This document shows positions 1 to 64,000 of a stretch of 64,000 nucleotides of DNA, in pieces. A program made the position numbers and the translations under genes. The first letter of the stretch is position 1, and each line of letters begins with the position of its first letter. The DNA comes from Bigelowiella natans CCMP2755 (Eukaryota > Protista > Cercozoa): contig ADNK01001423.1 of assembly GCA_000320545.1 (NCBI GenBank), positions 17,174 to 81,173 on the forward strand, read 5' to 3'. A model generated the notes under the pieces. That model saw nothing but the letters and a program-made list of their open reading frames with translations, did not search any database and had not been told where the DNA came from.

Positions 1-3000
1 AATCTTTTACAGTGCGTATGTCGAACTGGTCTATGTTGATGAAGAGGGTGTTCTCGAGAAAGAGAAGCTGTTGCAAGACGGCAAAGAAGTTTATTTTAGA
101 AGGACAATTCGGCAAAATGGATCAGCAGTTTATTCCATTAATGGAAAGGAAGTCTCAGCTAAGGGGTATCAGGACGTGCTCAAAAATATAGGCATACTCG
201 TCAAAGCTCGCAATTTTCTCGTGTTTCAGGTTATTTACGATTTGTATTCATCGGTTAATGTGAGAATGATGTACCAAATCAACTTTCAATCAGGGTGATG
301 TTGCAAATATTGCTCAAAAGTCTCCCTCGGAAATCACAAAAATGGTAAAAAATTTTGCCCCTTAATGCTCTGACGCAGCTCATTGACATAATCACCAGTT
401 TGAGGAGATATCCGGATCAAATTTTTTGGCTGAAAAATATGCGGAAAAGCAAGAAGCGTGCGAAGCGGTAATCTTTGATTTGTTGCACATCGATGATTTT
501 GATATTGATAACCAATTTTCAGGCTGAAGAGGAGGTTCTTCGAACCTTCAACAAAAAAAAGAGTGTTGCGAAGGAGAAAAAGCAGGTTCAAGAACAAAAA
601 CAAGAAGCAGAAATGTTCCAGAAAATGGTTGAGGACTTAAATATCAAGAAGTCTGAATTTTTCTTGTGGCAACTTCATCACGCAGAGAAGAATCTGCAAG
701 CTAATGAACAGAAGTGTGACAATGTGAATGAGAACCTGGACATTTTAAACGAAGAGATTGAAGAGGTGCAATCGAAGTTGAAGGAACATCAACGAGCAAG
801 TGGAAAATTTCGGCGAGAAGCCTTGAGCTTGGAGAAAAAGATAACCAAACAAAAACGGCAGGTGGAAAAAGCTAATCCCCAAAAAATCAGTCTATCTGCT
901 CAAATTGCAAGTCTAAGAGAGGGCGCGAAGAAAGCGGAGAAGGAACGGAAGAAGTTAGAAAAAAGTGAGAAAAAGCAGAAGCAGAAGGTTGAATCTTTAA
1001 TGTCACAGTTGGAGGATATTCAAGAAGAGAAAAACAAATTTGAGGCTGAAGAATCACAAGATGAGAACATCATTCAGGCAGAGCGACTAGAAGAATATAA
1101 TAGGAAGAAGCAGGAGGTTGGAATAAAGACTGCACAAATTCAACAAGAACTTGATGAGGTCTTAAAAGCTTTCTCGCAGAAGGAAAAGGTTCGTGAGAAG
1201 ACCGAGACGGAGATCAAAGTGTTGAATGAGGCAAAGGAAAATTCAAAACAAGCTCATAAGTACAACAATGATAAGCGTTTGAAGCTGGAGAAACACTGTG
1301 CTGATCACCAGAAGAATTTGGATAACTTCAGCAGTTCTTTGGCGGGTTTGACGCGTACGAGCGAAGATGCCACAGAAAGGTTGAAGGAGGTACGGCAACA
1401 GCTTGAAAAGTACGATCAAAAATTATTCACCGCCCAAGAGCATCGGCAAAAATCTAAAAGGGAGGCGCAGAAGTCCGAGTGCATCGATACCTTAAAACGG
1501 GTATTTAAAGGGGTGCGTGGACGATTCCATGAACTCTGTGATCTCACCAGACGGGAATATGGAATGGCCGTTACAATCGCTCTCGGCAAAAATATGGACG
1601 CAATCGTTGTGGATGAGGAGAAGGTTGCAATCGAATGCATTAAATATCTCAAGGAGCAACGTCTTGGAAAAGAAATTTTCATACCATTAGATACTATAAG
1701 AATTCAAAACAAGAATCAGGATCATTTTAGGAAATTGGGTGGCAGCTTTAAGCTCCTTACTGACGTATTTAAGTATGACGAGGATAACCACAAGGCATTG
1801 CTTTATGCTTGTGGCAACATGCTACTCTGCGACACACAGGAAGAGGCGAAGGGACTTTGCTACGCACCTGGAAACGAGGGCAAATATAAGGTTATTACGA
1901 AAGATGGAACGATCTTTCACAAGTCTGGGTCGATGTCCGGTGGATTTTCAAAAAAAGATCAGCAAAGGACGAACAAATGGAATGATAAGGAAATTGCAAA
2001 AGTACAGCACAGTCGGAATAGACTTCGTGAGGAATTACTGACTCTGGAGAGGAAAGAACGTACAGAGCGACCATCCAGAGAGTTGCAAGCTCAAATTGAT
2101 GCCGTCAAACAAAGACTTCACTTCTCTAAGATGGATCTTGAGCATATAACTAAAAGAGTTACGCAATTTGAGAATGACATCACTCGAATGGATGAAGAGC
2201 TTGTAGAAAAAAAAACATCCTTGCAAAAAATGCAGGCTGAAATTGCGAAAGATCGACAAAAAATTGATGCATTTCGTAAGAGAATATCGAAAGTTAGCGT
2301 TACAGTTTTTGCTGAATTTAGTAAGTCCGTCGGAGTTAAAAATATCGCAGAGTATGAGGAAAAGCGCCTCGCGGCTGCAGAATCTCGCGCAAAACGAAAG
2401 ATAGAACTTGCTGAAGCGGAATCTAGACTTCTGGGAGATTTAGAATACCAAAAAAGCCGCGACAACGAAAAGGCTGCAAAGGAATTGAAGAAGAAAATAC
2501 AGAATCTAAAGGCAAAGCTTGATGAGAAAGAAAGGACCCTGGAAAATTTCGATGCAGACCAGGAGAAGAAGAAACAGGATATGAAACACGATGAGAAAAT
2601 ATTGAAGGAGCTCCGAAATAAGTTAGTTGATGCTGATGCAGAAGTTACTGGAGTCAAGAGTTCAGAACAGGAGTTAAAAAAGAAGCTGACGAAATTGGAG
2701 AGGAAGAAAATCTCTATTGAAGCCGAAAGTGAGAAGCTTGCTAGTCTGCGTAGTGAGGTGATTAAGCAAGCTGACATGAACCAAGTCCAGCTTCCCAGAG
2801 TGGAGCGCAAGCACAAAAAGGGTGTAAAAGATGCAGACCATGTGGAATTTGATTACAGTCTCGTCAAAGAAAATACGGACGTTAAAGACGAGAATGAGTA
2901 TGACCGGATCAAACAGAGATATATGGACGAAATAGCTTCCACTGAGACTGACATTCAGAAGATATCCCCAAATATGAAAGCTTTTGAACAATACAATGCC

Positions 3001-3993
3001 GTGGAGGAGCGTTTGAAATCAATGAAAGATGATTTTGACAAGAAACGAACCGGGCAGAAAGTAACATAACAAAAATAAATTATTTAATTTTTGTAACCTT
3101 GTTTCTGATGTAGTTGTTTTATAATTAGGACATCGTGACAGAATTTGAGGCGGTTCTTCAAGAACGAACAGAGACATTCATGCGAATGTTTACTCATGTT
3201 AAAGAAAACATCGATGTACATCTCATACCACATTAATATTGCATTTATATACTCAAACAATTTATCCTTAAAATGGCAGGACGTTTATAAGGCTCTCACA
3301 AAAAGCCAAAAACATCCTTTGGGGGGGAATGCGTACCTAAACTTAGAGGACGAAGAGGTTTGAACAGAGCATAGAACGTTAAGTATTTTATCATAAATAT
3401 TTCATTCTTTCAGAAACCTTTCCTTAGTGGCATAAAATACAATGCTATGCCACCTGGCAAACGATTTCGGGATATGGACCAATTATCTGGCGGAGAGAAA
3501 ACGGTATTTGAGACAAATGATTGTAAGTGAGCATCATAGATACTCATTAAATATTGTGCATATAATTGCAGGTTGCGGCACTAGCTTTGCTATTTGCAAT
3601 TCATAGCTGCCATCCAGCTCCATTTTTTGTTCTCGACGAAGTAGACGCAGCTCTTGACAGCGCAAACGTCAACAAAGTGTCCAACTATGTTAGGTACGTT
3701 TTTGTTAATTGGGGATGACGGCATTTTAAATAAAGTTTTTGTGTAGGTCGAGAACAAGAGAAGAGGCCCTCCAGTGTATAGTGATTTCTTTGAAAGATAC
3801 CTTCTATCACAAGGCGGACGCATTAGTTGGCATATATAAAGACCAGGAAGAAGAGACATCAGGATCACTTACAGTTGATCTTTCTCAATATGGAAAGAAT
3901 GTGAAGTTGTCCCATAGTGCAATATTTGGAACCCAGGATTCCAGCTTACAAGACTCGGCCGAATTAAAGGTAGGAACAGATTCAACATTATGA
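1..3993 (+). CDS. SMC1: Cohesin subunit SMC1 (multi-exon, 5' partial; start lies upstream of the window)
   Basis: The N-terminal head reads [12 protein letters not shown]|[17 protein letters not shown]|FEEISGS across GT-AG introns (230-293, 345-397, 467-522). A 2.5-kb exon (about 523-3060) encodes coiled coil and hinge ([35 protein letters not shown]). C-terminal exons give [21 protein letters not shown]|[26 protein letters not shown] and [20 protein letters not shown]. Stop at 3991-3993. Confidence 0.96.
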
Positions 3994-4721
3994 GTTTAGG
4001 GCGCTGAAATATCTATGTAATAGGCATCCCCAACTCCCAGTCGTTCATCTAGAAAACGTCACCGATGAAATTCATCTTCAGATTAAGAAAGTTAAGATAT
4101 CTGGATGTGTAAAAATCCGAGTCTAAAATATCGTTGGTGAAGATGCTTCTATGAACTGAAATATGAAAGATATTCTCATCAACGTAACGTTCATATGCCA
4201 ACATTATGTGTAAAATAGAAATTCACAGATGTGCTGCCAACGTAAGATGGCGCTATACATTGCGTACCAAAGCAGGCCCATCAGTCATTTTTAAAACGAT
4301 GAGGTAGCGGCATTGCGGCGGCAACTTACTATTATTGCTATTTACATAAGTGTGCTGCGCTGCGAGTGCTACTACTCTTGTCGCCCTGCGGTAACTAAAT
4401 CTTTGCATGAATGCACACTTACACTAGGCAGCTTGAGTCTGTTTAGCTGTCTCCAATGCTTTGCATATCTGCATCTTATAGTCTTCGCGCTTTCTTTGCG
4501 TAATTGCTCATGCACAGCGCTAGACGAAGCGCCGACGCATGTGCTAGTATGTGACAAACATTACTAGATTATTATGATACAAATATCGGTCATGTAAGCT
4601 TGTCGAGCGCTACTTCACACCACTAGACTAGTAAACTACTGAAAAAATGCAGGAATATATTCCAGTAATTACTATCATGGATTTGCGCGTTTGAGTGTCT
4701 GTAGGCTTATATTATAGTCAT
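3994..4721. other. Convergent (tail-to-tail) spacer 1, SMC1 / RasGAP-PIPK; moderately CTAG/GCGC/CATG-rich core about 4250-4650
   Basis: Lies between the SMC1 stop (+) and the PIPK stop (-). Contains e.g. GCGCTAGACG, GCATGTGCTAG, CACTAGACTAG. This is the weakest example of the spacer class. Confidence 0.6.
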
Positions 4722-7700
4722 CTACTGGTTGCAAGCAGGTATAAAGTATTCCTTTACATAATCAAAAAGTAGTTTGCCGCAGTTGTTTGCGTCTGACAAA
4801 CTACTCTTTACCGGCCGGAAAATCACCATTTCAAATGCTGGGACACAAACCTTATCATTCGTTCGCCATAGGACTGGTGTTAAGGAGATTGTGTCGTAAG
4901 TAAAATAGCAACAATTGATTTTCACACTATGAACATGTACCTTTGGCGCTATTGCAGAATGTTGGTCTCCCTCCCATAGTATTGTACGCCTCCAAAAATT
5001 TTCAAGCTTTCTCTTCGTGTTGTACCTGGAAAGAAAACTCAGCTTGAAGATAGGAGAAAAAATTAACGTATTGAGGTTACTTACTCGCGCATTATATCAA
5101 TGATGCCTACGTAAACGACTCTCTTCCTCATTCTGCCCTTTCTTTCAACTGGTGTGCTAGGGATTCCATGGAAAATTGTCGATTCTCTCAATGTGCTATC
5201 GGCCATTCCACTAGATTTGGACCCCTACTCGTCGTTTAGAATCGAGTTGTTAACAATATAACACCATATTCCACCCCACCATCCCCATCATCACAATCAT
5301 CACGACGCATTCATTTACGGAGGTCCACTCACTGATTCATGTGATGTTGATGTTGATGATGATGATGATGAGGATGAGGATGATGATGATATCGAACAAA
5401 ATGATGATCACGAAATAGTATTTTTACTCTTAAGTTCTCTGATTCTTGCATCAGCTTTTGCTGTAGCCTAACAACAACATTCCATTATATCTTAGCTTGT
5501 AGCATTAGTACACTGAAAGAGATGGAATTTACCGCAAGCTCATCTTGTAGATAAGAGCACGTTGCTTACGCAGTCTGATACACAAATTATTAATAGGCTG
5601 CTGCTGAGTACGATGAGGTAAAGATTTTTATGGATTTATTGTGCACATACACGGAATTGTTTTGAAAGTCGTCCTCGTTCAGAGCCCAAACTTCCTGGTT
5701 GTTCAGTAGCCCGTAATGTCCATGGTGCTGTAGTATATAAACCATTCCAATAAGGACAGGATAGCGGAGGACCGGGACATACAAAATTTAGTGTAACGTG
5801 GCATTATGGATGATACCAATTTTGCTACGACTATATCTTCTTTTTCTTTATATTTTTCCTTACTCCGCTTTCTTCGAACAACTTTCGCTGTGACTCCATA
5901 GTACGTTCAACGTATACTCCCACAATAAGTCGGTATCCCTACCAGCACCATTATACCGGTGACCACCACTCAGATTAGAAATTAGTAGCATGAGAAAAAC
6001 GACAACAAGGACACGTTGCTACATCGATGAAATTATACCTGAATCCGATGTTTAACTAGCCATTTGATATCGTTCTTTAGCTGTTGAACGACCTTACCAC
6101 CTGCATGGGCGAGTCGTAGCCCTTCATCCTGGAAGTCTCTGTCTTTGAGAACCTGCACTGCTTGCCTGTACCATGTTTCATTAAAAAAAATGACTCGCTC
6201 AAACTTTGTCATTATTAGAGGAAGAAACGAAAAACCATCATCAGCTTTTATAGCAGTAGTCTCACCGTCTCTCCATCTCAGAAGAAGTGCGGTCGCTTGT
6301 TGCTTTGAGGTCGTAACGACTGTGGAGAATCTGCTGTCCGTAACATACATTCGCCATGACAACCCAATAGCTTGTTTTTCCATGATATGTGATTTCATAC
6401 ATGCCCAGGATTCTTGCAAGGAGTGAATCTTTGTTGTCGCGCACATGCTGGTAATACGGTTTCAGAAGAGAAAGAAAGTATTTAAACTCTGTTTCAGACT
6501 GGTTCTTAATGATAAATCGTTTATCATACGTGTAAATGAAAGCTCCTCCACTCTTTTTGCTGTGAACAATGTCGGCGTAAGGTAAGTTAATGGCCAGTGA
6601 CACCATTATTTGCTCCATCAATACACCGAAGACGTTCTGTAGCTTCATAAATATCATTGGCGCATGTGCAAGTACTACGTAATTAGAACGTTGTCCACTC
6701 TCTGCCTCTTCCTTGATTTTTTCCTCCACCATGTCAGAAGTTACACTCATTTTTGCTTCAAACTCACTGTCCTTTGTCCCCCTAGGAATATTTCTCTCCA
6801 AGCTCAAACTCACATATTCCATCCCAGATAATAGCATGAATATTTCTTGTAGTATCCTTGCTGTTCTATTGTTCTTCTGCTTAATTTCAGCTTCAGTGAT
6901 AAATATTCTCACTTTCCGTAAATTTCCCTCTCTTGATACTCCAGGCATCATATTTTTCTTCATATTTTCTCCCCCACCACCACCCCCATCATCATCATCA
7001 CCTCCTCCTTCTTTATCACAGGGTTGCTGCATTGTCCTCCCTTCCTCGGGAAGCAGTAGTAACAAGTACTGGCGTAAATCCTTTCGCATTTGGAGCAAGT
7101 GATATGAAGCTAGCTTGTTATTCTGATTGCTTTCCAAGTGCGAGAGATGTTCATCTGGTAGCCTGCAAAACTGTGCAAGATACATGTCCATTCTAGATCT
7201 TGCTCCTCTCAACCATGGATTCAAAAATGCTAGGTGGCTGGAAGAAGGATATAGTTTGTTATTGCTGGAAGTCATCAAAACTTTACACAGTAGCTTGATA
7301 TTCGTTCTCATAGCATCTCCTTCTAGAGCTTCCAAGACTCGTTGAGGGTTGTAGAAGCCGTTTTCTTCATCAGGAGCCTCAAGAAGGCCTGATGGATATA
7401 GTAATTTCGGGTTGAGAAGTCGGAGGAACACAAACCCACCGATCAGCCGCAACACACCCGAATCAACTCCATGCGAGCTTGTTCTTGGGGTTGCTGGGAC
7501 GGATTTTATACCAGTACTGTTGGTACTTCCTCTAGAAATCACCACATCGTCGTTTCTCATCTGCAGAATATTCGGTTTGAGGAAGCCTCCCCCCCCTTGC
7601 GTCGACGATCTTGGAGTAGTAGTAGCGTTTCCAGGTGGTGGAAACTTCTTACTCACAGCGGCGAATAAAGAGTTGACGACAAGCTGAAAATCTGAACTTC

Positions 7701-8742
7701 CCGAACCAGAATCTACTATGGCTGTAACCATCTTATCACACCATTGCAGCAATTCTTGCTGGTTGCGTTCTAAAATCTCTTTATCGCTCACCTTTTCCGG
7801 ATCTACTTCAAGAATCCGTGCTTCAACTGATGAATGTGCAGGGGTTAAAGATTGTGTGATATCAACTAAGAATGAGCTGAGACTGCGATTTAGGTGAGAC
7901 ATAGAATTCACCGCAGCACATAGAGCAAGCTCAGTCCCATACGACGTAGTTCTCAATGCACTTCCATGGGATTTTGCTTCATTTAATTCCTTCATAAGTT
8001 GACCGTATAGTAGTCGAACTCGCCAGGCAGGAGACAGCAAATTAATAAATGCTGCCACAGCATGTGGACGTATAAGATGTGGATCTCCAGATATCATATC
8101 AATCCTTTTCCTGTGTTGCATGGTGAGCACGCTCATTCGCACGTTTCTGCGGCCATGTTTTATTGACTTCCCCAGCATTCTGTTGATTGTCCATACTGCT
8201 GCCCAATCCTGTGCCATTTGTTGCAAGACGGCGTCTAATTTGCTCTCAGTTTCAGGTATGGAGGATGATTCTTCCAGAACCTTAAGCTCCTCGTGCGATG
8301 GGAGCGAAGAAGTCCGGTCTTTAAATTCTATATCTTGCTCCTCTTCAATTGCCATTAGAGGGTTGGTAAGCGACTTTTTGCCTTTCTCAACAGCAGAGTG
8401 TCGTTCAGATCCCTCTGCAAATCTACTACTATCCCCTTTCGCAGCCGACGATGATGATTCAGTAAAACCATGTTCATCATGATTCCACAAGCTTTCCTCA
8501 TCTACAATTTCAAATGAACTTGCTTCGATCCAGCGCGAAACCACTCCCTTGTAGATATCACTGTTCTTATCTTTTATCATCTCCTGAAGTTTTCTTGATA
8601 GTTCCAGGCAACTTTCCGCATTTCCCCCACTGTCTCCGGGAAGAACGTCGAGCACAAATGTTGTCGACTCCTCGCTATTATTGTTATTCAACGGCCCTCT
8701 ATGCTCACCATAAGAGGACGCAGATTTGTCGCGATTTTTCAT
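4722..8742 (-). CDS. RasGAP-domain + phosphatidylinositol-phosphate kinase (PIPK/PIP5K)-domain fusion protein; multi-exon, 5' end unresolved (may extend to about 9480)
   Basis: One open frame (6262-8742) carries RasGAP motifs (LIGGFVFLRLLNPKLLYP; NIKLLCKVLMTSSNN; HLAFLNPWL), then PIPK motifs (SKKSGGAFIYTYDKRFIIK; SLLARILGMY; VVMANV; HSRYDLKAT). Downstream minus-strand exons give VLKDRDF, QQLKNDIKWLVKHRIQ|GYRLIVGV, VYVGIIDIMRE|YNTKRKLENFL and a last exon ending PACNQ* at 4722. Confidence 0.88.
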
Positions 8743-9095
8743 ATGAAACTGTGATATGTCTTACAGGCCACAAGATTTATATAGACGCCTTGGTGCAGAT
8801 TCATTCAGGTACATCAGAAATGTGCTCAATATTGCCATGGATCTAACACTCCTCGGTGCGGTTCTTGTGATAATATGGAAGAGTGAATGTGTTTGAGTGC
8901 CCCCCAATGAGTTCGGATAGCAACATCCAGTACTTATTTAGTGCCAGCGGATAGGATGGCAATTTGACACCAATGGATACAAGTCATCAATTGTATCTAT
9001 CCTTCATCAATCCTATCTATCTATGTATTGTTGTGAATAACAAATGCTTTCCTACAGGACGAAGATGAAGTCTCCTCCTCTCCTCCTCCTCCTCC

Positions 9096-9126
<31 letters not shown>

Positions 9127-9501
9127 AACTAGCAACTATCTAATTAGAAATAGAACTATGAGAATTGACGAAGAGGGCACTTTTTTTTAAATTTTATACT
9201 AAGTTGTCGCTCCTCAAAACCATAGGGGAATTTTCCGTCCTTTGCAAATTAGCCGTGGGTAAACTCGAATGTGTGGGGGACTGCATTGTAACATTTTTGC
9301 AACGATTACATTAAAAATTACGAATGTGTCAATGCCCGAGATTCGCGCATCTACAGAGTGTTCTATCCTTACGACAAGCGCTATATTGTAAAGTTCAGTA
9401 AAAGCGCTCCCACTTCCAGTCTCAGCAGGCCCCGAGACGAAGGCGGCCCGCTTCCCTCGCTCCCTAGTACAAAACACCAATTGGCAAGCTCATTCGGAGC
9501 A

Positions 9502-10707
9502 ATGGCAGAAGGCGAACAGATAACTGAGAGAAGAAAACGACATAGCTCGAAAGAGAAATCTGGAAAGTCTCATAAGATTCCACCGTGCTCTCATCACATC
9601 AAACGGAGACATTGTAGAAAAAGAGGGCGTGAGGAAAAGAATGTTGTTCATCTTACCCGGTTGATTCACCGAGGGCCTAAATTTGAAGTATGGTCTGGTA
9701 TTGGCGGTAGAAGTGCAGCGATGGCCGTCAAGTTGATCTCTCCAAAGCTTGAAGGAAAAGAAAAAATTATCAATAAAAATGTCATTAGACATGAGGCAGA
9801 GCTTCTACGTTCATTGCCTTCACATCCGCATATTATTTCATTTTATTCTTACTGTGATCAATCTACCTGGATGACAAAGACTAGCATTTACGAGACTTCT
9901 GCGCTTGTTGTCGAGCTGGGGGAATTTGATATCTTGGAAGTTCTTAAGTTTAGTAAGGGCTTCACTGAAGGGGTAGCCTATATTGTAAGCATGTCGCTTC
10001 TCTCAGCAATCAAGCACTTACATTCAGAGGGGGTAGCTCATGTTGATATAAAGCCCGAACAATTGGTTGTTACATCAAAATCAGTTGTGAAGCTAATTGA
10101 CTTTGGCACTGGCTCAAGGTCGCAATTTGTAGAAAAGCCCACGGGAACAGAGGGATATCTCGCTCCTGAGATGATGAATGTCCGATATAAGAAAAGGGTA
10201 GATCTGCTAGCCGCTGATATGTGGTCTATTGGTGTAGTCATATTCACTTTAGTGTGCGGCTTTCCACCATTTCGGGTACCAAGTTTGCAGGACCCCCTCT
10301 TTTCTCTATTCCACAAGAAAAGACGAAAATTTTGGATGTTAGTTCGTTCACGTGGAATTAAAATATCTTCTCTTGCCCAAAAATTTATCGATGATCTTTT
10401 GAAAGTTCCAACTGGTAAGCGATTAACAGCACCAAAAGCCCTTACCCACCAATGGATGCAACGCCACCAATTACTCCAAGAACAAAATGGACGGGAGTTT
10501 CGAATTCTTCTTCAAAAATATCGATCATCTATGAAAGGTAAGCTCAAATATCTCGATGGTAAGAAGAGTGGAAAATTAACACTGGTTCGTCAAATGTTCA
10601 AGAGGAACTGCCTCAAAAAGCGTAAAGCGGTTATGCAAAATAGTTTTGAATGTGCTCGCAACCGGCAATCTCGAAAGGTCGTACGAAGGAAATGCTCCAA
10701 GCAATAA
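9502..10707 (+). CDS. Intronless Ser/Thr protein kinase (CAMK-group-like) with basic C-terminal tail
   Basis: Uninterrupted ORF (frame open from 9358, first ATG at 9502). Motifs: AVK, HEAELL, HPHII, HVDIKPEQ, KLIDFG, GTEGYLAPE, DMWSIGVVIFTLVCGFPPF and KRLTAPKALTHQW. Confidence 0.9.
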   Translation: MAEGEQITERRKRHSSKEKSGKSHKIPPCSHHIKRRHCRKRGREEKNVVHLTRLIHRGPKFEVWSGIGGRSAAMAVKLISPKLEGKEKIINKNVIRHEAELLRSLPSHPHIISFYSYCDQSTWMTKTSIYETSALVVELGEFDILEVLKFSKGFTEGVAYIVSMSLLSAIKHLHSEGVAHVDIKPEQLVVTSKSVVKLIDFGTGSRSQFVEKPTGTEGYLAPEMMNVRYKKRVDLLAADMWSIGVVIFTLVCGFPPFRVPSLQDPLFSLFHKKRRKFWMLVRSRGIKISSLAQKFIDDLLKVPTGKRLTAPKALTHQWMQRHQLLQEQNGREFRILLQKYRSSMKGKLKYLDGKKSGKLTLVRQMFKRNCLKKRKAVMQNSFECARNRQSRKVVRRKCSKQ

Positions 10708-11762
10708 AATCAAATTAAGTTTTAATCTTCTCAAGAAATCCTGACATTTTGCAATTTTCATTTTATTGACTTCTTCTCATGAATTAATCAACTGTCATCA
10801 GCAAATTTTCCTGAGAAAATACGATTGGCATCAAATATTATAGGAATTTCCCAATAAATGTAACAAAAATGCAGCTGTCTTGTCTGGAAGCAGACTTGCA
10901 TGAGCGGCTACAGTCTGAGAATATAAGAAACAAGAAATGTGAAGTTAGGATAATTTGTTTTATTTTTAGTTGAAATGACTCAAAGGAGCTGCTGATTTCG
11001 CAGTCGTAGGACCCGCCATTATCGCCATGCTAGCATGTGCTGGAATTTCTCTAGTTCTGTTTGACCAATCTAGCAATGTTGAATTGTTACGAAGTGATAT
11101 CAAAGTGTACCATCATGTGGTTAAGGCAATGCTAGGATGGCTTATTTTCCCCAAGCCAACTTGTTCTCGATGTGCTCAATGCATGTGCACTCTAGCTAGC
11201 TTAGAGGCTATTCTTACATGCTAGCATGAACAATGTGTGAGATGTCTCTGTTGTGATGAGCTAGCTAGACACTGCGATGCATATATGCATCTAATATGGA
11301 ACGCCGTAGCGCACAATGAGATATTTGTGAACATTGCACGTGATTCACATCTAGCAGACATGCTAGCATGGCTAGATGGTAGCATAGGCGTAAAAGGTTT
11401 GTCGCATCACACCCTCTGATGATAGGCAGATAGGCCTAGAGAATGCAACGTAGATAGTGCCAACGATACTAGTAAGTATTCGCAGTATGGCATAACGCCA
11501 TAATCAGCTCGTCATGCTTATTCTAGTATTACATAGCAGCATCATATCCCCACATAATAAGCACACGCTAGCGTAGCATGCTAGCATGTTATGTGTTTAC
11601 ATCAATCAACGGGAAGACGAATATTCACGTCGGCAAATACATTCGTCTAGTCAATGCATACCAGTTTATCCACAAAGTAACGCACGGAACGTGCGTCCTA
11701 CTATCTAAAATAGGTGAACACGAAAAACGTCCATCTTCCTCAAAGATCTTTTCTGCTCGTTT
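10708..11762. repeat. Convergent spacer 2, kinase / hydrolase; palindrome-rich core about 10890-11660
   Basis: Four exact CATGCTAGCATG copies (11026, 11217, 11359, 11577), plus many CTAG, GCTAGC and TGCA words. No credible coding exons. Confidence 0.8.
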
Positions 11763-48699: not shown

Positions 48700-48734
<35 letters not shown>

Positions 48735-49750: not shown

Positions 49751-49793
<43 letters not shown>

Positions 49794-50312: not shown

Positions 50313-50345
<33 letters not shown>

Positions 50346-50719: not shown

Positions 50720-50756
<37 letters not shown>

Positions 50757-50763
50757 TTCCACA

Positions 50764-50805
<42 letters not shown>

Positions 50806-51320
50806 CCTTGTTCCATTTATACTTCATCATGTACAGAGAGTAAGGGTATTAATATTGTTATCGATTATTATTATTATCACTACTACCACCGTCACAGGTA
50901 ACACCATCTTCACGAACTGATGACCCAACACCATTCCCCGAGCCGCTGCAGGCAGCACAGGCAGTACAAGTCCAAAAGCACCACCACCAGCAACAAAAGC
51001 AGCGTGAGCCATCACGTTGGTCTTAGTGAAAAACAAGAAGAAGAACACTATATTATAGGTCAGTAGTAGTACTAGCAATATCATTATGTGTGATTGTACA
51101 TACTTTGTAGTAGTAGTAGTAGTAGTAGTAGTAGCGAATAATGTGTAATTTCTTTGGCTAGAACACCTTAGACTTCTTCACTGTTTTTCTGTAATCTTGC
51201 TTTTAGGTTCTTCTTCCACATAGGATTGTGCATCAACATGAAGATTATCTTGGAAAAATAGCACACAGCAGACACGAATCAACAGTAATAACACTAGTCG
51301 ATATCCTGGGCATTACTTAG
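48463..51320 (+). CDS. Hypothetical protein with N-myristoylation-type start and degenerate EF-hand-like motifs; 3' exons tentative
   Basis: Exon 48463-48598 MGAGSSSSSEGWKG...ILMDLYKAYARTDHI. Exon from 48903 GKSRTRDFARDLVRWH...DVKKE. Exon from about 49266 VYRIINFFDVGREGRIYKGALL. These first three exons join in frame at GT-AG. Later exons and the stop at 51320 are guesses. Confidence 0.5.
48769..48902. repeat. Minisatellite, 3 copies of a 43-44-bp unit, inside an intron
   Basis: TAGATGCTACCCACCAGCATGACCAACTGCATCCATACTATAAT-type unit at 48769, 48812 and 48856, directly abutting with no spacers. Confidence 0.93.
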
Positions 51321-52510: not shown

Positions 52511-53089
52511 TCATCTGACAAGCATCATGCTAGTCTTGATGCAACGTACTGGATGTACGATGACTTTAGGTTGTGAAGAAGGGTACCATCGTACACTACA
52601 GTTATTGGGATCTATCATGTCATCGCTCTGACTGCTCCCCATGCATTTTTTCGAAAATCCCTTTTCCATCGTATTCTCTGTCTTCTTCATCATAAGTCTA
52701 AATTTGGGAAGAGATTGATGTCCCTCTTTCAGGGGGATAAACCTTAGTTTCACTTCAGCCTCCGCATACTCGATAAAATTTCCTTTCTCACCATTATCAT
52801 TGTAATGGCCAGCACGAGAAGAATACTTCAACTCCAATTGAGAGCTCATAGTTTTCCCTGCAACGAGCCAAGTCTGGCAAATACACAGCAGCAGCCCTTA
52901 TTCTATTGAACAATACAATGTAAAAAATACTAATGGTATGATAGTCAATTTTTGAGCTCTATAGCTTAGCTTAGCTTACTGACGCAACCGAAGCATTCGG
53001 AAATAAAACACAAAATTAGCTTAAATATTTGGGGATGATGTTAGTGATAACAGGGAAACTATTACTGCTACTACTTCCCACTATACTTT

Positions 53090-53132
<43 letters not shown>

Positions 53133-54130
53133 ACTCCGCAAGATTTGTGATCGACCAACAACGATACTTGTCTTCTCCGGTAATTGCTGCTGCTGCTGCT
53201 GCTGCTGATGTATGATGTAAGTACTTTAATGTAAACATTAAACTCATCTCCCACGATGACTTGATGAGGAGCACGGATATTGATATTGAACAATATTGCC
53301 GATGATGATGATGATGGGCAATTCCTAGTAGTACTCTGTTTCTCTATGTAAGAACGAGAAATGGGGATGATGGTGGTGCTGGTAGGATCTTGAGTATTGC
53401 CATCATCTAAATTAGCAGCAGCAGCAGCAGCAGCCACCACCGTTTTACTATCTCTGCCGTCGTCTTTTTGATGGTGATGACCGGATATTAGCGTTCTCAC
53501 CGAGTGGGGTGTGGACATTAACATTCCAGAAGAAGGAAATGTTGTAGAAGTGGGAGGAGGAGGAGGAGGAATAGGAAATAAAATAGGTACTTGGTAGCAT
53601 ATATAATATCGCTCCAAGTTTCGAGAAGAAGTTTTTCCAGAAACGAATTTATTTTTTTGAATAGCAGTGTATGAGATGATAAACTTTGCAGTAGTTTTGG
53701 CGTAATAACCGCCAACGTTGTTACCACCAGTAGCGATAGTAGCTGCTGTTACAGCAGCAGCAGCAGCAGCGCCACGAGTTTCGTGTGAAATAAGAAACAA
53801 GAAATGGTGCGGCAAGTTTGGATGAGTCACCGGTTCTCTTGATATTGGTGATGATGAATTGACTCCAATAGTTGTATCATCATCATCTTGGTAATTCTTA
53901 TGATTCGGATCCAAATCAGTTATGTTGAAATAGCCCTGCTTTGAAGTAGCAGCAGCAGCAGCAGTCCATTTGTACGTCCTCAGACTGAAAGCAGTGGTGC
54001 TTGGACCAAGAAGAGGAGGGGGAGGAATAACCGACAACTTCATTCTGACCAAAAACTGTTGGTGGTGCTGGTGGTGCTGTGGGTTTGACTTTTGCATTGT
54101 TTGACTGCTAGTAGCAGCAGCAGTAGCCGC

Positions 54131-54163
<33 letters not shown>

Positions 54164-55540
54164 TATAGTTGTGGTAGTAGCAGTAAGAGTGAATGGAAAT
54201 ATGAACCATAGAGGCTTGCATCCAACACACGATATAGTAGTGCTACTACTGCTGCTGCTGCTGCTACTATTACTACTACTACTAGTAGTAGCCTGATATC
54301 TCGCTATTGCATACAATTGACACTTTCCTCCTGCATTTGCTTTCTGCCGGTTTGATGGTTGATTTTCTTCCTCTTGATTATTATCACCACCAGCACCAGC
54401 ACCACCATTATCATCATACATCTTGTTTTCAAGTTGTAATGCGACGGGTTGTATTGTACGATTCAACCTCTTCACTTTAAACTTGACAGGTACCATTAGT
54501 GTCACAGCGGAGTGGGGGGGGATATGAGTATCTTCCAGAAATAAAATACAAGAAGAAGACAAAGACGAAGAAGAAGAAAAAGAAGAAGAGGTTGATGATC
54601 CAATATTACTGTTGCTGTTGAATTCTCTGCTAGTATTGCTGTTATCAGGTATTCCCTTGTTCTTCTTGTTCTTCTTCTTTCCCCCTTTATTCTTATTATC
54701 GGTAGCGTTGTAGATATGATACTCGACTCTGTCACCCATTGTCCCTCTTGCTGGAGGTGCAGCTTTAGAGGTAGTAGTAGTAACAGCAGCCACTTTGAAG
54801 ACAACTACTCTGCTGCTGTAGCACGATTTAGAAGAAGAAGAAGAAGAAGAAGAAGAAGAAGAAGAAGAAGATGATGAGGAAGAAAGAAATCCTTTGATGA
54901 CACTTGTCTTTTCTTCATTACGAGAGACGATGGTGCTTATGTTACTGTTGTTTGGGGTGCTGCTGCTGCTGGTGGTGGTGGTGTTGGTGGGGCTCTTGCT
55001 CTCCCGTACCAAAAATTCTAAACAGCCGTTAGTACTGCTGTTGATATTGCCAGCACCTTTGTCCATATGTGCGGCATCTTCATCATCATCATCATCAGCA
55101 CTACCACCATCATTAGCATCACCGTCATCATGCTTATCGTTGAGTACTATATCGTATGATGATGATATTAAGTGCAGCTGCATTCCAGCAGCCATTCCAC
55201 GTTGAGCAGTGCGAACGGTAATCGGGATCCATTGCATACTATTGACGCTCAATGTTTGCTTGGAAAAAGAAGAAGAAGAGGAAAAAGGAGCATCACCATC
55301 AAACATAGTACTACAACTCTTCTCGAGCTGCTGTCTCAAAGGAACAAGATCCGGATGTAAATGCCACGGAAACTCTGCAAACTACAAGTAAAAATAATAC
55401 GCAACAGCACAACAGCACAACAGCATTCGTGATCGTTGTCAGATGCGTTGTATTGAAGGAATAGAAGCTTTACTATTACCTCTACTACTACTACTGCTAC
55501 TACCACCACCACCTCTCTCTAAACACGAATACCACATTTG

Positions 55541-55582
<42 letters not shown>

Positions 55583-56431
55583 AAGCTATTACTCGACTCC
55601 TACGACGACTACTACAACTACTAGTACTACCTGTACTGGTGGTGGCTCTTTTATTGAATCTGCATCTTGTTTTTTTTTTGTGGTGGTACTTGTTCTTCTT
55701 GTTCTTGTTCTTGGTATCATCCTATTTGATCTACTAGCGGTACTTGCTGATGCTGTTGTTACACCAAATGATATTTTGGCGAAGCTACGATGAGAAAAGA
55801 GATGTGAGGGGTCAATCCGAACGGATAGTACTGAAGATAAGGACTTCAACTTGTGGGTAGTATAAGTAGGAGTAGCATTAGCACAGTAGTAGTAATTGTT
55901 ATCATCATCATCATCATCATCGTTTTTTGGTGTCCCTGAATCACAACGAAGAGGAGGAGGAGGAAGAAGAGGAGTATTATGTCCCCTCTGGATTGATAGA
56001 AGCTTAGTACTCTTCTTCTTGTTCTTCTTCATCCTCTGGATTGTAACATCATGCAACTGTAATACAATTGGAGAACATTCTTCCTTCTTCTCCTCCTTCA
56101 TCTTATCATCATTACTCCCTTTTTCATCAGCTTTATTTCTTTGTCCTGGTGGTGGTGGTGGTGGTGATGGTGGTGGTGATGATCCTCCCAATACGGCCCA
56201 CACTGCTAGTATCTTTGAATTCACGGACGATGAAGCACCAGGACTAAAAACACCACCACCATCACTACTGCTGCTGCCCACAGAGCCTCTTTTGTAGAAT
56301 TGGTGCACCGAAATAGTAGCAGAAGGAGCAGGAGGGAAAATCGCCTCGTTGAAATATCGAAGGAACGTTTGACGTGCTCGGTCGTAATCCACCAACAAAC
56401 GGCGCCTATATGTATACGTGTATACGTGTAT

Positions 56432-56468
<37 letters not shown>

Positions 56469-56685
56469 ATAATAATAATAATAAATAAATAATAATAGTA
56501 GACGTATAATGTTTGATGGCATTGGATGGTGATAATAATGCTATTGCTGATAATGATGACGATTATGATGATTTAGACGATAATACGAGAGAAAGAATGA
56601 AGCCGCTTTAACGATGATGCAACAACACAAACTGAAAATTGAGTATAATATTTTATGCTTTTTCCTCCCCCCCCCCACCCCCCCT

Positions 56686-56745
<60 letters not shown>

Positions 56746-56926
56746 TATGACGTATGTTTGATATTATTACTTGCTACCTTGCTTTTTTAGAAACAAATAG
56801 TTTAGTAGTAGGCCTCCTCCCCTTCTTTCTTGTATTATTCTTGAGGAGTTGTTGTGATGAAGGAGGAACATGCATCAAGTAAATCCAAGTTATCTTCCCT
56901 GCTGGCAGCAATTGTACCCCCTCTGT

Positions 56927-56994
<68 letters not shown>

Positions 56995-57094
56995 AAATCC
57001 TTATTTAAGGAAGTTATTCTAATGTGTATTATATTATCATCCTACACTTTTCTGCTGATCATCAGAGATAATAATAGTGAATGCATACACATAC

Positions 57095-57128
<34 letters not shown>

Positions 57129-57225
57129 CAATAGTCGTACCACATCGATATAACATGGGACGTATGTGTTGTCGCAGATAGCCCCTACAGTAGTAGTAGT
57201 AGCAGTAGTAGTAGTAAGTAGTTGT

Positions 57226-57256
<31 letters not shown>

Positions 57257-58180
57257 TGTTGTTGTAAAAAACCAGCAGCCGATAACGATAACAACATAAC
57301 AACAACAATAATAATATAAACACATTCCAGCAACGACAAGCAAAGGCGTACGTAACAGTGATGATGGCGAAGAAAGACGTATATTGCTGCACTATTACTG
57401 CTCTAACACTGTTACTGTTACTATTACAAGTGCTACGAATAGAATGATGAATGCCGACGACTACTATTACAACTAGATAATAATAGTAGCATTTATTATT
57501 GTCAATATGGGTAAGAATGAAAATGTACTACAAAACATTATGCTACTGTTTGCTGCTTTAAGACAGCAAAATAATAATAATAAATAATAATAGTAATAAT
57601 AATAATAATAATCATGCTGATGATGTTGGCAGATGATGATAAATAGCACACAAATAATAATTACGCTTTTGAAAGAAGTGGATTATGTTCCAGTTGTCCT
57701 CCAATTTTGGTAAAGGTTCCTCCTCCTCCTCCTCCTCCTCCTCTTCCGCCTGCCTTCTTATCGACGAAAACATGAAGATATGGTGCGGCTGGAGAGGGAG
57801 GAGGCATAGTGCCTCCTCCTGCTGCTGCTGCTGCTTCTACCCCATTATTTTTATGATCATCAGCGACAGCAGCAAGATTATCGCCCCCCTCCTTGTCATC
57901 ATCATCATCATCATCATATTCTTTGTTGTTGTCGTTGAGCTGATTGCGAATGAAATCACTATCCTGTAGTAGTAGCAGCAAACAAGAAGAACAACAACAG
58001 CATTGATATATTGCTAATAACTAGGTGCTTTGTAGGTTGAAACAAAGCTCATTGGCAGGTATCTAACTCAAATAATACTAGTACCAGTAACAATAATAAT
58101 AAGAAGAATACTAATAGTGAAAAATACCAAAAGTGAAAAATATTTATGAGATATGTATACTAATCTGAAAATACTACTAT

Positions 58181-58213
<33 letters not shown>

Positions 58214-59485
58214 CTTGTGCAATGTTTGTAGTAGTACGTTCATTTCCTTCAACTGAACCTACATAAGATAACGATGATGAAGATAAGTTAGTGGAATATA
58301 CAGGTATATAATAATACACAATATATTCAGATGATAGCAGCAGCAGCAGCAGCAGTATTGATGAGAAGAAACATCCTATTGTGTACGAATGCAAAGCTCG
58401 ATCATCATCGTTATATCATCGTCAGCAGCATTTTTGTCAGTGTCTATACACAACAAACAACTCTGATTATTATTCTTCCAGCTTTTCCCCCCCCCTCCCC
58501 CTCCTCATCCTCCTTCTTCCTCTATATAGAGACTTACTCATCGTGATACTAAAACTAACTACTACTAGGGTAATCAACTAACATGTGAAGGTAAAAGATT
58601 GGAAATCCCCATCTCTATTATGCCACTGTGTTTATGTCCTCCTCCTCCTTCTCCTGCTGCTGCTTGTGATTGTTTCTCATCGAGTGATGCGGGTAGTTTT
58701 GGCAGCGATCGTATTGACTCAACCTGCCATCGATCAATCGATCAATCAATCAATCAATCAATCATCATTTACGAGAACATGATAAATGATAAATCAAGAA
58801 CACAAGAAGAAATAGTAGATGTAGTAGCAGCGGCAGTAGTAGTAGTCAAGTTAATGTTTATTAAGATGGCAAACACAAACAAGATATTGATTCCGCTAAG
58901 TGCATCGTCATTGTACACTACACGATGGACATGTCATTGATGTGTTTATGGTGGTGATGCTGCTACTCATGTAGTAAGTTAAGTAGTAGTACACACTGTT
59001 GATCAAGCTGAATCTAAGAAATAAAAAACATCTTCCTCCTCCTCCTCCTCCTCCTCTTTCTTCTTCTTGTAGGTGGATTTACTTTAAAGAATCCTTCCGT
59101 AGATGTTGCGAATGTTGGTGGCTTCGGTGCTGCTAGTGTATTCCTATCAACGTTTACCCCCTTAATGATATCGTCATCATCATCATCATTTTGATCTTTG
59201 TTGTCCTTATTCTCGCATAGTAGTTTCCCTCCTCCTCCTCCTCCTCCTCCTTCTCTTCCTTCTTCTTCTTTTATCATCATCGTCGTTCTCATCGTCTTTA
59301 GCTGCTGTTTCCTCCGCATAAGGAGGAGGAGGACTCGACGTCGTGGGAGGAGGTTTTGACTCATGAACAGTAGTTGTTGTTTAAGAAGACTTATTAATGC
59401 ATCATCGCCTCCTCCTCCTCCTCTTCCTCCTCCTGTTGTTGTTGTTGTTTACCCGGCGAGAATTAGGATTAGTAGGGTCCTTATT

Positions 59486-59522
<37 letters not shown>

Positions 59523-59849
59523 GCATCCATTCATCTCTAATCGATTCAATATTTTCATATATTGTCATCATCGCTACTACTACCGAAGAATATGGATGAT
59601 GGGCGGTATAGTGTATAGATACAGATCAATCGCATGTTGTGAGAAGAAGAAGAAGAAGAAGAAGAAGAAGAAGAAGAAGAAGCACACTCCGCCTCCTCCT
59701 CGTCCCCACCTTGCCGTGTAGCTGCAAGAATTAGATGCAAGATAGATTCGGTGTACTGTTTCCATATTCTTGTCGCTGCATTTTCATCAAAGTAATAATC
59801 ATCATATGCATCGAGCTGCTGCTGCTCGTTGTTGTTGGAAGATGATTCT

Positions 59850-59883
<34 letters not shown>

Positions 59884-60365
59884 CAGCAGCAGTAGTAGCA
59901 GTCTTTGCTATTGCAGGTGCTGCTACGGTATCAGTAGTCTCTGCTTTCTTTGCAGAATAACGATGATAACGATGAAGAAGTCGATGATTATAATGATCTT
60001 GAGGCCACCACCACCACCAACAGATGTATGATGATGTTGATGATGATGATCTCTCTACCCTTCCCTTCTTCTTCTTTTTGTTTTTGTTGTTGTTGTTCTT
60101 CTTCTTCTTGATCAGCATCTCCTTTTCAGTTTGGCTATAGCGTTTTGCCATCAAGAGCACCGATTGCTGAAGAACCACATTAGAAGTAGAAGTAGAAGTA
60201 GCAGTAATAGTGGTGTTGATGAGACCAATGTCGTAATAATGATAATAATATACATTGTTATTAGTGGTATAGTAGCTGTAGTAGTTGGTGTGTATATAGT
60301 AACAACGAACACCTTTGTAAGGCCTCTTAAGCATAAATGTATCTGAAAAACAATCGACATCAACA

Positions 60366-60397
<32 letters not shown>

Positions 60398-60713
60398 CTG
60401 CAATATCAATTTGATTGTTGTGATGAGAGCAATCTCCTCCTCTACCTCCATCATCATCGTCACACACTATTACATATAGCACATCTACCTTGAGCTGTGT
60501 GATGTGCAATAATTTGGCCCACCTGAGCATTAAAAGCAGCAGCAGCATTAGTGATGGTAAGAAGAGAGATTGAGCATAGTAGAAACAACTATAGGAAGGA
60601 ACACATCAATCATCACTATGTTTTGTACTACAACTACTACTACGGTACTACTAGTGCTGCTACTACCGCTCACTGTTGTATTCCTCTGCTTCAGAACGGA
60701 ACATCTATGATTA

Positions 60714-60755
<42 letters not shown>

Positions 60756-61091
60756 TCACCGATGACATAAAAGGAAAGAATAAAAATAGCCTCCTCAATG
60801 CTTACGACTATTTGCAACAACTATTACCATAGTGATCGCCGTCATTGTCATCATCATCATCATCATCGTCGTCGTCATCATATCAATATAGACCTTGAAT
60901 GCCTCGTAGAAATGACCTCTAAAGAATAGACCGTGTGCCATTATCGATAACACGCGCTGTATTATCATCATAATACAGATATCATCATCATCATCATCAA
61001 CAACAACAACAACTACAACAAAATGGAAATAGTACTGCAAGAAGAATGCTTGCAAACGAATGGTAAAACTACTACTACTTATTATGTATTC

Positions 61092-61125
<34 letters not shown>

Positions 61126-62213
61126 TATTCCAAACATAGAAACGCTCAATTTTCCTTCACTAGTTGTTTGATTGAATGATCTAATCAATACATCAATAAA
61201 TCAATATGTATTAGTGGTAGTAGTAGTAGTAGTAGTAGTACACATCACAGACATCTAATTGTGTGCCTCTTCTTATCTTCTTCTTCTTCTTTTATTTTCA
61301 TACTTGAATACTACTTCTTCTTCTCACTAACCCTCAAATGTCTTTTCGATCGAGCTTTCTTGAAGCAAAACGCCGCCACCTTTATTATTATTATTGTTAT
61401 TATCATTACCATAATCATTATCATTAAAACGAAGAAGCAAGAGTAAAGGAGGAGAGAGGACAAAAGAAGAAGAAGAAAATAATGATGAGGGCAGCACAGA
61501 TTCATCATAATGTGTGTGTGCTGTACACCTTTATCATCATCATTATCATCGATATTTGTTAGGGTTATTGGGGTGGTAAGAGTACGGTAGTAATGGTAGT
61601 CGTTGTAGTAGTAGTATTGGTAATAGTATTAGTAGTAGTAGAAGATACATACGATGACAGCAGTAGCAAGCAGCTGCAGTAGCATCACCATGAAGGACAA
61701 TAAAAGGAAATTGTAGTTACTTGAGCAACTTGAAGGAGGATGGTGTTGAATATACGAGGAGATTTAAGACCCAATATTGTTGTATTCATCCTAGTTTCAT
61801 GATTCCTTCGTTTTCCCTGCAATAGTTATTATTATTAGTAGTAGTAGTAGTCATTTGTTGTGCTAGTGGCAGTGTTTGTCTAAAATTGATATGAAAATAT
61901 AATGACAATAATAGGGTGTAATTATAAATAATGAATAACGTATATATATATATATATATATATGTATATAGTCTCCTTCCTCCACCATTCATACGTTCAT
62001 GCATTTACGTTGATTCTTGGTATAATTAGCAACAACTACTGACTTCAATAAAGAGAGGTGTCGTAGCGATTGTAATACTACTCACAACTTGGAACAAACG
62101 ATTAAAGATAACGACAATAATGACGACACAGAATACCTTAAAATGTTTTTCCTCGTCGGCGTTACACACTGCTAGTATGATTGAAGCTGCTGGTGCTGCT
62201 GCTGGTTTTTCGC

Positions 62214-62246
<33 letters not shown>

Positions 62247-62693
62247 CATGATCGTTTTGATACATCTCATCATGAAATTCGTCGTCTTGAATACCACCTC
62301 CTCTTCTGATTATTAGAGTGTTATACTACAAGTGAGAGTAGTTTTGAGGATGATAATGATTCATACAGTCTTTTTATCTTTACTACTTTTCCCCCTCCCT
62401 CTACTATATTCATCTAATACTCTCTCTCTCTCTCTCTCTCTTATTATCTCTTCTTTTCACTATCATCCTTATCAACATACTCTTGCTCTTCATGTTGATG
62501 TCTCTCATTTGTAGAAGTAGCAGCAGCAGCCGTTTGAAGTAGTGACTCGTAGTATTTTGATTCGTAGTCAATTTCGAGCTGATTATTATTATTTATCATT
62601 ATTTTCACATTTATATCAACCACCAGATAGTGTGATAATAGTATATGTCATGTTACTATTGCTTATCTAGGCTACTGCTACTGCTGCTGCTTT

Positions 62694-62733
<40 letters not shown>

Positions 62734-62980
62734 TAATAATAATAACAATAATTATAATAAGAATTTATGTTAACAAATTACCTCTGCACTTACGTTAAAC
62801 CAGCAGGGCAAATCATCATATTTTTCTTCTTCTTCCAGCCTTTTAGATTCTAGATGATCTTTCTTGCCGCTGCATACTTCGTCGTCGCAATCGTGATCGT
62901 GTTCTTGGAGTTTGAAATGATGGTCAAGATGACGACGCATTGAGGTGGTAGTGAGAGGAATGAACCCCTTCTTGCATCCC

Positions 62981-63015
<35 letters not shown>

Positions 63016-63329
63016 TATTAGCAGCACAACACATCGATATCCATTGTCAGCATGATGATGATTATCATTGTGATAACTGAATAACTGTTGTGTGTGTGTG
63101 TTTTCTTGTGAGTTTATATGGTGTGATTGGTTATTCCTGATTCATACTATAAGGTGAGTTTTTCCACCACCACCATCATCATCATCATCATCATCATTAT
63201 TATTATTATAAATTTAGAGTATAGATAACATACATAGCTTATCAGCATCCTGATGACTTGCATAGCCCTCAAGCTGTTGATTGTCGGCAGTAGTAAGTAG
63301 TAGAAGTACCACAACACACAACTTAGATT

Positions 63330-63362
<33 letters not shown>

Positions 63363-63512
63363 TGATCATCATCACCATCATCATCAAATCATCAAATCAT
63401 CATCATTGTTCCAAGAGAGAGAAGCTACGAAGTACTAACCCCATTTCCTGGTAAACAACTCTCTTTGAGCCCCCCACCTTAGGGTAGTAGTCCTCCCTGC
63501 GAGAAGAAGAAG

Positions 63513-63563
<51 letters not shown>

Positions 63564-64000
63564 GGATGGGTCAATAATGGTGATGATAATCATAATGATG
63601 GCGATCATGCTACATGTACTGGTTACTACCTACCGCATATTGCCTTCGATGAAGTTGCTACTACCAATGGCTACTTGTCTTTTTCTTCCTCTTTTTGTTA
63701 TCACAGTCGTTGTAGGTGTGTGAGCTGCTTGGAGGTCGTCTTTGCGGTTGGGCAACGCATTAGGGTAGAGAGGAATAATATGATGATGATGATGTGGGAT
63801 GTTTGTAGTAGTAGTGATGTTATTGCGGAGAATAGTACACGACGATGATGAGAATTTAGAGAGAGGTGGAAAAATTTTGGTGCAGATCATTGTAAATTTA
63901 TATCCCCCATTGCTGTGCGTGTTAGTAGAGGTTGATTTTGCCCCCTCTTTCGCAATATTTATTGCCAACTCTAAATGAATCGTGTGTCTTCAGAAAATGG
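52511..64000 (-). CDS. TRAPPC10: TRAPP II complex subunit TRAPPC10/Trs130-like; many exons, 5' partial (runs off the window)
   Basis: C-terminal EVKLRFIPLKEGHQSLPKFRL; NIRAPHQVIVGDEFNVYIKV; LSVNSMQWIPITVR (recalls plant TRS130 LLINExQWxGIIVR); YVPCYIDVVRLLS; LLSIQRGHNT. Coding-looking exons are scattered up to 63968. TRAPPC11 cannot be fully excluded. Confidence 0.62.

Follow-up and report, generated by a model that had tools for sequence, protein, structure and literature searches.

Strict strand alternation in a 64-kb window

Fourteen genes in a 64,000-nucleotide stretch of the nuclear genome of the alga Bigelowiella natans CCMP2755 lie alternately on the plus and the minus strand, and every one of the 13 junctions between neighbours is a strand switch. 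The stretch, hereafter referred to as the window, covers bases 17174-81173 of an 81-kb contig (ADNK01001423.1, here C2314), with its right edge at the contig end, and corresponds to scaffold 31 of JGI Bigna1; the assembly comprises 91.4 Mb in 3736 contigs. The DNA of the window is eukaryotic and intron-rich with a GC content of about 41%, and scans of it for tRNAs and Rfam families gave no matches. With moderate confidence we take the alternation to be a real layout of the nuclear genome rather than a chance run, arising from gene pairs with bidirectional promoters and from the avoidance of transcriptional read-through.

The strand of each gene was assigned from matches to Pfam or other families, from proteins derived from transcripts or from splice junctions in RNA. 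The genome was searched for families exon by exon, and both long and short open reading frames (ORFs) were checked with Pfam. The alternation across the 14 genes is thereby confirmed, and the odds that an earlier note on this DNA had given for 13 switches in 13 junctions (2^-13, or 1/8192) are correct. Co-oriented arrays of the kinetoplastid or dinoflagellate type are absent, the longest confirmed same-strand run being a single gene. At six of the junctions the neighbours are arranged head-to-head, each on its own strand, and are transcribed apart.

The series opens on the plus strand with an SMC1-like gene (1..3993) that begins upstream of the window and contains an SMC hinge at 475-3069 and weak SMC_N matches at 71-298 and 3739-3993. 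It is followed by a RasGAP-PIP5K fusion on the minus strand (4722..8742), of which both named domains fall within the ORF at 6262-8742, a Ser/Thr protein kinase on the plus strand (9502..10707; Pkinase, E = 7.5e-40) and an alpha/beta-hydrolase with a long N-terminal region on the minus strand (11763..14028; Abhydrolase matches). Next come a C2-like protein gene on the plus strand (15063..18567), which starts with an ATG at 15063 and is represented by the MMETSP transcript protein P0010, importin-11 (IPO11) on the minus strand (19503..23182; TPR_IPO11, E = 2.5e-31) and RAD50 on the plus strand (24737..29091), identified by an SbcC/RAD50 Walker B match and by the 1312-residue transcript protein P0009, which maps on exons 24737-29088. 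A minus-strand gene for a cold-shock-domain protein (30450..31059; CSD, E = 2.1e-18 at 30453-30623) precedes the plus-strand gene CWC15 (31411..32660; Cwf_Cwc_15 exons 31411-32657). The remaining five genes are a sorting nexin (minus, 34230..38279), a cyclin (plus, 38660..42071, both ends approximate), SSL1, the p44 subunit of TFIIH (minus, 42957..47470, 5' end approximate), an orphan (plus, 48023..51400, end approximate) and a TRAPPC10/11-like gene (minus, 52511..64000) that probably continues past the contig end.

The sorting nexin carries a PX domain (E = 3.1e-10 at 36893-37132), and by our own direct reading of the exons, BAR-like exons would extend the PX protein to 34,230 and fill the interval 34.2-36.5 kb; a search with the Vps5 BAR family of Pfam gave no match to it. 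The cyclin has a weak Cyclin_N match (E = 8.8e-5) in the first of three plus-strand exons that resemble cyclin-box helices (39660-39896, 40087-40305 and 41164-41304), and none of the ten minus-strand ORFs across the same region had a significant match, the single hit being at chance level (E = 0.02).

SSL1 and the orphan were followed at the transcript level using RNA contigs from three studies over the region 46001-52000. Six or seven introns of the form CT..AC, located between 46072 and 47689, belong to SSL1, the transcripts of which extend to about 47,470-47,700. The orphan contains eight GT..AG introns, all falling between 48204 and 51204, and hence at least nine exons, with a start at about 48,023; its spliced contigs identify it as a genuine expressed plus-strand gene. 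Thus, two neighbouring spliced transcripts leave one short gap (47471..48022) in opposite directions, with the 5' ends of the RNA contigs about 320-550 bp apart. Farther along, at 51.6-51.9 kb, the same contigs show the orphan and the TRAPP-like gene almost meeting at their 3' ends.

The contigs also revealed alternative splicing in the 5' region of SSL1 (47314-47689): an acceptor near 47316 pairs with donor ends near 47375 and 47438, a further joint connects 47401 to 47689, and the contig of one run retains 47216-47420 unspliced. The 14 RNA-supported introns of the region (46072-51206) are 60-304 nt long and share signals on the exon side, with donors of the form ..AG|GT and acceptors of the form ..TAG|G, which should be helpful for gene finding in the B. 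natans genome.

No hidden same-strand gene was found at four suspect places. The first of these, 46.9-48.4 kb, is one of the two intervals where the earlier note had asked for RNA data to exclude missed co-oriented genes; the contigs from 46,900 to 48,400 contain only the 5' exons of SSL1, the gap of 320-550 bp and the first exon of the orphan. The second is a plus-strand ORF at 18073-18564 (18.1-18.6 kb), which our first gene finder called as a separate gene. This candidate was rejected by the mapping of P0010, which links 16675-17670, 17786-17893 and 18085-18564, and because the protein joins it to the upstream exons, the ORF is the last exon of the C2-like gene. The third is an ORF of 347 residues upstream of the hydrolase: the hydrolase fold opens at the end of this ORF and runs through an exon at 12756-12845 into 11766-12578, and since the fold spans both parts they form one gene. 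Finally, the interval 43-45.7 kb is filled by SSL1, since the p44 zinc finger (C1_4, 43104-43175) sits at 43.1 kb, far downstream of the Ssl1 domain at 45700-46297. The other interval named by the earlier note, 14050-15050, lacks any convincing sign of an ORF, a Pfam domain, a tRNA or an Rfam family; the sole ORF of the gap that includes it (14,029-15,062) is AT-rich and scores as non-coding.

A possible exception to the single-gene runs is found at 52.5-62.9 kb, where two minus-strand models are present; should they be separate genes, the tally becomes 13 switches in 14 junctions. Across 52.5-64 kb all ORFs have minus orientation, and low-complexity sequence takes up a large part of the region. 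No match was obtained with Pfam for the ORFs of this region, with the Pfam family TRAPPC10, or in a word-index protein search with an ORF of 737 residues in the 52.5-56.5 kb region. The 737-residue ORF resembles the immunoglobulin (Ig)-like C-terminal parts of large TRAPP subunits, with scores of 0.86-0.89 that provide a lead only. Another ORF of 302 residues is mostly of low complexity, and a full-library search matched one exon of 43 residues to JGI model 135974. The protein of this model (P0008; EukProt Bigelowiella_natans P016250; jgi|Bigna1|135974|aug1.31_g10682) is 386 residues long, maps to ten minus-strand exons from 62940 to 57664 with up to 96-100% identity, and less on a few short exons, and resembles the Foie-gras_1 solenoid of TRAPPC10/11 (scores 0.92-0.93).

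In a single TRAPPC10/11 protein the solenoid comes first and the Ig-like tail after. Because the P0008 region and the 737-residue ORF occur in this order we read them as one gene, and from these resemblances the TRAPP-like region at 52.5-62.9 kb is quite probably a single gene that was split by Augustus. The competing possibility is that alternation is strong yet not strict, with at least one same-strand junction in the window, either between the TRAPP-like ORFs and model 135974 or owing to small genes in the divergent gaps of 1-1.5 kb. P0008 does derive from a separate Augustus model, which has a start and a stop codon of its own and lies wholly on the minus strand, and with the RNA contigs covering 46001-52000, small genes might lie at 14050-15050 and 23200-24700. 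With the domain order pointing to one protein, however, and with the other seeming tandem ORF, at 18073-18564, having turned out to be a last exon, we regard a hidden tandem junction as rather unlikely.

A weak match to TRAPPC10_1st was seen on another contig (C2312:5256-5393, minus strand), and with model 135974 looking like the middle portion of a TRAPPC10/11 gene, the TRAPP-like gene may run across a scaffold gap. A weak PDB match had suggested a Beclin/Atg6 identity for 59555-60463, which was dismissed since the APG6 domain of the genome is on another contig. Low complexity due to trinucleotide repeats, encoding stretches of the residues Y, T, S, D, K and P, gives rise to long false-looking ORFs at 55592-56572 and 59558-60466; it is present in many real exons too and broke the RNA assemblies at 50123-50379.

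Two classes of intergenic spacer

The gaps between the genes fall into two classes that follow from the orientation of the flanking genes. The seven tail-to-tail gaps are about 730-1570 bp in size (median about 1055 bp) and make up 13% of the window, yet they contain 149 of its 259 CTAG tetranucleotides (58%). The density of CTAG is 17.9 per kb in these gaps, as compared to 3.9 per kb in the six head-to-head gaps and 4.0 per kb in the whole window, and CATG and GCATGC are also enriched in the tail-to-tail gaps. The pattern is seen in each spacer. The first (3994..4721) has 9.7 CTAG per kb with a cluster at 4049-4628, the second (10708..11762) has 18 CTAGs (17.1 per kb), the third (18568..19502) has 17 (18.2 per kb) and the fourth (29092..30449) has 20 along with a palindromic (TA)27 at 30035-30088. 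A cluster of 36 CTAGs at 32569-34265 covers the fifth (32661..34229), a cluster of 13 at 41411-42871 overlaps the sixth (42072..42956), and the seventh (51401..52510), the sequence of which was read directly, is the richest with 36.9 per kb. Long (TA)n microsatellites adjoin the CTAG-rich DNA of convergent spacers at 30035-30088, where the run is perfect over 54 nt, and at 34049-34094.

The association with convergent gene ends also held when strong CTAG clusters were taken as the starting point. All 14 such clusters, seven in the window and seven elsewhere, were read as having a plus-strand ORF to the left and a minus-strand ORF to the right; the chance of this outcome is (1/4)^14, although some of the anchor ORFs are weak.

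The earlier note had described the chromosome as repeating modules of a short shared promoter, a divergent gene pair and a palindromic convergent spacer. The short shared gap, the divergent pair and the presence of a convergent spacer fit the window. The convergent spacer is not a palindromic element and contains no long-armed palindrome: what inverted repeats it has consist of reiterated short units, namely (CTAG)n, (TA)n and GCATGC, and the word palindromic is right only in the sense of short self-complementary words. Inverted repeats are absent from the divergent gaps.

In the six head-to-head gaps the distance from one coding start to the other ranges from 351 to 1554 bp, with a median of about 656 bp. 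The gap between the RasGAP-PIP5K and kinase genes (8743..9501, 759 bp) has 2.6 CTAG per kb and no inverted repeats. The one between the hydrolase and C2-like genes (14029..15062, 1034 bp) was read directly, and its sole ORF lacks a Pfam match. The gap between IPO11 and RAD50 (23183..24736, 1554 bp), for which the RAD50 start at 24737 was taken from P0009, has 1.9 CTAG per kb. Bidirectional promoters are usually defined by start sites that are less than 1 kb apart (PMC2648788). By the ends of the RNA contigs, the start sites of SSL1 and the orphan are at most 1 kb apart; for the other five junctions the distances (351-1554 bp) refer to coding starts. Of the six copies of the word TTTAAAAA in the window, four fall in the head-to-head gaps (7% of the DNA), for example near 9186. 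It is possibly a TATA-like element, in a sample that is too small to judge.

The nature of the gaps and of the genes that flank them bears on whether the alternation could be a neutral by-product, either of gene birth from divergent transcription or of inversions and insertions focused on fragile CTAG-rich tail-to-tail DNA. The expressed orphan, which has no recognizable family, and the conserved SSL1 gene have a promoter gap in common, as would be expected from gene birth, and self-complementary repeats abound in the convergent gaps. However, in most pairs of the window both partners are old and conserved, as is the case for IPO11 and RAD50 and for the cold-shock-domain gene and CWC15; recent gene birth cannot explain such pairs, and we consider a neutral origin unlikely.

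Strand runs beyond the window and the proposed layout

To estimate how far the alternation extends, we used a logistic strand caller trained on the window, with ORF length, coding score, splice-motif asymmetry and purine skew as features, followed by two-state smoothing. The independent sample consisted of two other contigs and the 17 kb upstream of the window, in total 167 kb, or 126 kb after exclusion of a giant gene of 41 kb. Self-trained gene finders (a codon-usage scorer and two versions of a hidden Markov model that included splice sites, with 231 kb of training sequence) over-predicted tiny genes or introns; only the first conservative gene-finder pass and the logistic caller were retained.

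In leave-one-out tests the caller was correct on 13 of the 14 genes. After smoothing it recovered 10-12 of the 14 runs in the window, corresponding to one run per 5.3-6.4 kb. It called no false switch in the giant gene and a single run over the 11.5-kb TRAPP-like region, but it was trained on that region, where the gene count is unsettled. The 126 kb of independent sequence contained 23-27 strand runs, or one per 4.7-5.5 kb, while a control in which the window genes were shuffled and flipped at random gave one run per 7.5-9.3 kb. The B. natans genome has 21,708 coding sequences (bioRxiv 10.64898/2026.01.13.699255), which over 91.4 Mb amounts to about one gene per 4.2 kb. From the run density and this average gene density, a rough lower bound of 0.77-0.90 was obtained for the fraction of switches outside the window; at least 22 switches among 29 junctions would be expected with P = 0.004 if p were 0.5.

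The alternation seems to continue directly upstream of the window, where a Raptor gene on the minus strand (Raptor_N at L002:1368-2216) is followed by a plus run of about 7 kb, a minus run of about 4.5 kb and then SMC1 on the plus strand. If each of these runs represents one gene, the alternating series counts 17 genes. Pfam searches with 30 ORFs outside the window matched Raptor_N, WD40/EML and RCC1 only.

These results bear on the question of whether the window owes its pattern to luck, in a genome that is only moderately biased, with about 60-65% opposite-strand neighbours as in brown algae of the Ectocarpus type. Only one window was examined in full, and with about 1,400 such windows per genome, rare runs are expected somewhere; the weak autocorrelation outside the window would also be consistent with a moderate bias. 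Against this, the probability of 13 switches in 13 junctions at 62% per junction is about 0.002, and the run density of the 126 kb agrees with the alternating window and not with the randomized control. We therefore consider a lucky stretch very improbable. The alternation is probably genome-wide and far stronger than the brown-algal bias, and it is likely, given the 126-kb sample and an imperfect strand caller, that whole chromosomes are built by alternating modules. We judge it to be an even call whether strand switches make up more than about 85-90% of all gene junctions across the 91-Mb nuclear genome, such that the genome is almost completely tiled by promoter-sharing two-gene units with shared termination zones between them.

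Several points weigh against a genome-wide, promoter-based layout. The figure for the whole genome was obtained indirectly, from a small sample, with a caller that misses genes that are short or have short exons, and under the assumption of an average gene density. In a cruder analysis, the autocorrelation of ORF lengths, the negative lobe that alternation predicts at 3-7 kb is present within the window, but beyond it the lobe is not clear. The six divergent gaps yielded no promoter motif in common. Finally, JGI has a separate minus-strand model (57664-62940) adjoining the TRAPP-like ORF.

According to the explanation that we favour, based on bidirectional promoters and read-through avoidance, each promoter gap would be a single nucleosome-free region that fires both ways, with both directions used by genes. 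Almost every junction would then be a strand switch, because head-to-head pairs meet the next pair tail-to-tail. Neighbours in the same direction would be selected against, since read-through from an upstream gene would enter the promoter of the next. The tail-to-tail gaps would serve termination only, free of constraints from promoters and read-through, and for that reason insertion scars, microsatellites and CTAG/CATG-rich junk may gather there.

Gene orientation is near random in most eukaryotes, and the exceptions are either modest (about 60% in brown algae) or opposite, as in polycistronic arrays. In kinetoplastids, the divergent strand-switch regions are zones of transcription start and the convergent ones are zones of termination, and the two spacer classes of the window would correspond to these. 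However, tens to hundreds of co-oriented genes separate the switches in kinetoplastids, whereas the window has one gene per switch, each with its own introns. In yeast, tandem neighbours are about as many as opposite-strand ones, and we know of no CTAG-rich spacer class there. A resemblance to yeast lies in the shared zone of convergent gene ends, which in yeast stops transcription from both sides (bioRxiv 10.1101/2022.11.02.514956). Like the bidirectional promoters of animals, plants and yeast, the head-to-head gaps lie between two genes that are transcribed outward from one short common region. Such bidirectional pairs are a minority, comprising about 10% of genes (PMC4089025), whereas in the B. 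natans window every gene belongs to a head-to-head pair.

The closest parallel is provided by the brown algae. For the Ectocarpales, the share of neighbours on opposite strands is reported only as one that "can be greater than 60%", and the short divergent gaps in Ectocarpus have been linked to shared nucleosome-depleted regions (bioRxiv 10.1101/2024.02.19.579948). The B. natans window likewise has opposite-strand neighbours above chance and short divergent gaps (median about 656 bp, against about 1055 bp for the convergent ones). It differs in the degree of alternation, with 13 of 13 junctions in the window and the rough lower bound of about 0.77-0.90 elsewhere, and in that B. natans is an unrelated rhizarian alga with a distinct class of CTAG-rich DNA in its convergent gaps. 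Full-text searches, the coverage of which did not include the genome paper from 2012, identified no published description of an alternating layout for Bigelowiella or the chlorarachniophytes.

If true genome-wide, the layout would represent a mode of eukaryotic genome organization that is the reverse of polycistronic arrays and goes far beyond the alternation biases reported so far. It would imply obligately two-way promoters in this alga, or terminators that are not strong enough for genes in tandem. Near-perfect alternation in a medium-sized, intron-rich genome would offer a natural experiment on transcriptional interference, two-way promoters, supercoiling between neighbours and convergent termination. 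Gene finding would be aided, since strand can be predicted from spacer type and vice versa, and models that are split or merged become conspicuous. The layout should also be useful for the design of expression cassettes in B. natans, and it gives a frame for the CTAG-rich DNA.

Other features of the genes

The nucleophile-elbow motif of the hydrolase is GHGMGG (12300-12400, minus strand, ORF 11766-12578), with a glycine at the position expected for the catalytic serine. Judging from this substitution, the protein, which has an N-terminal region that is long and membrane-like, may be a pseudo-enzyme without activity.

The giant gene that was excluded from the independent sample is located on the plus strand of another contig (G000:C2862:155240-196078; L004-L008). 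It consists of near-contiguous ORFs of 2,837, 10,314 and 399 residues with very high coding scores, and encodes more than 13,000 amino acids over about 41 kb.

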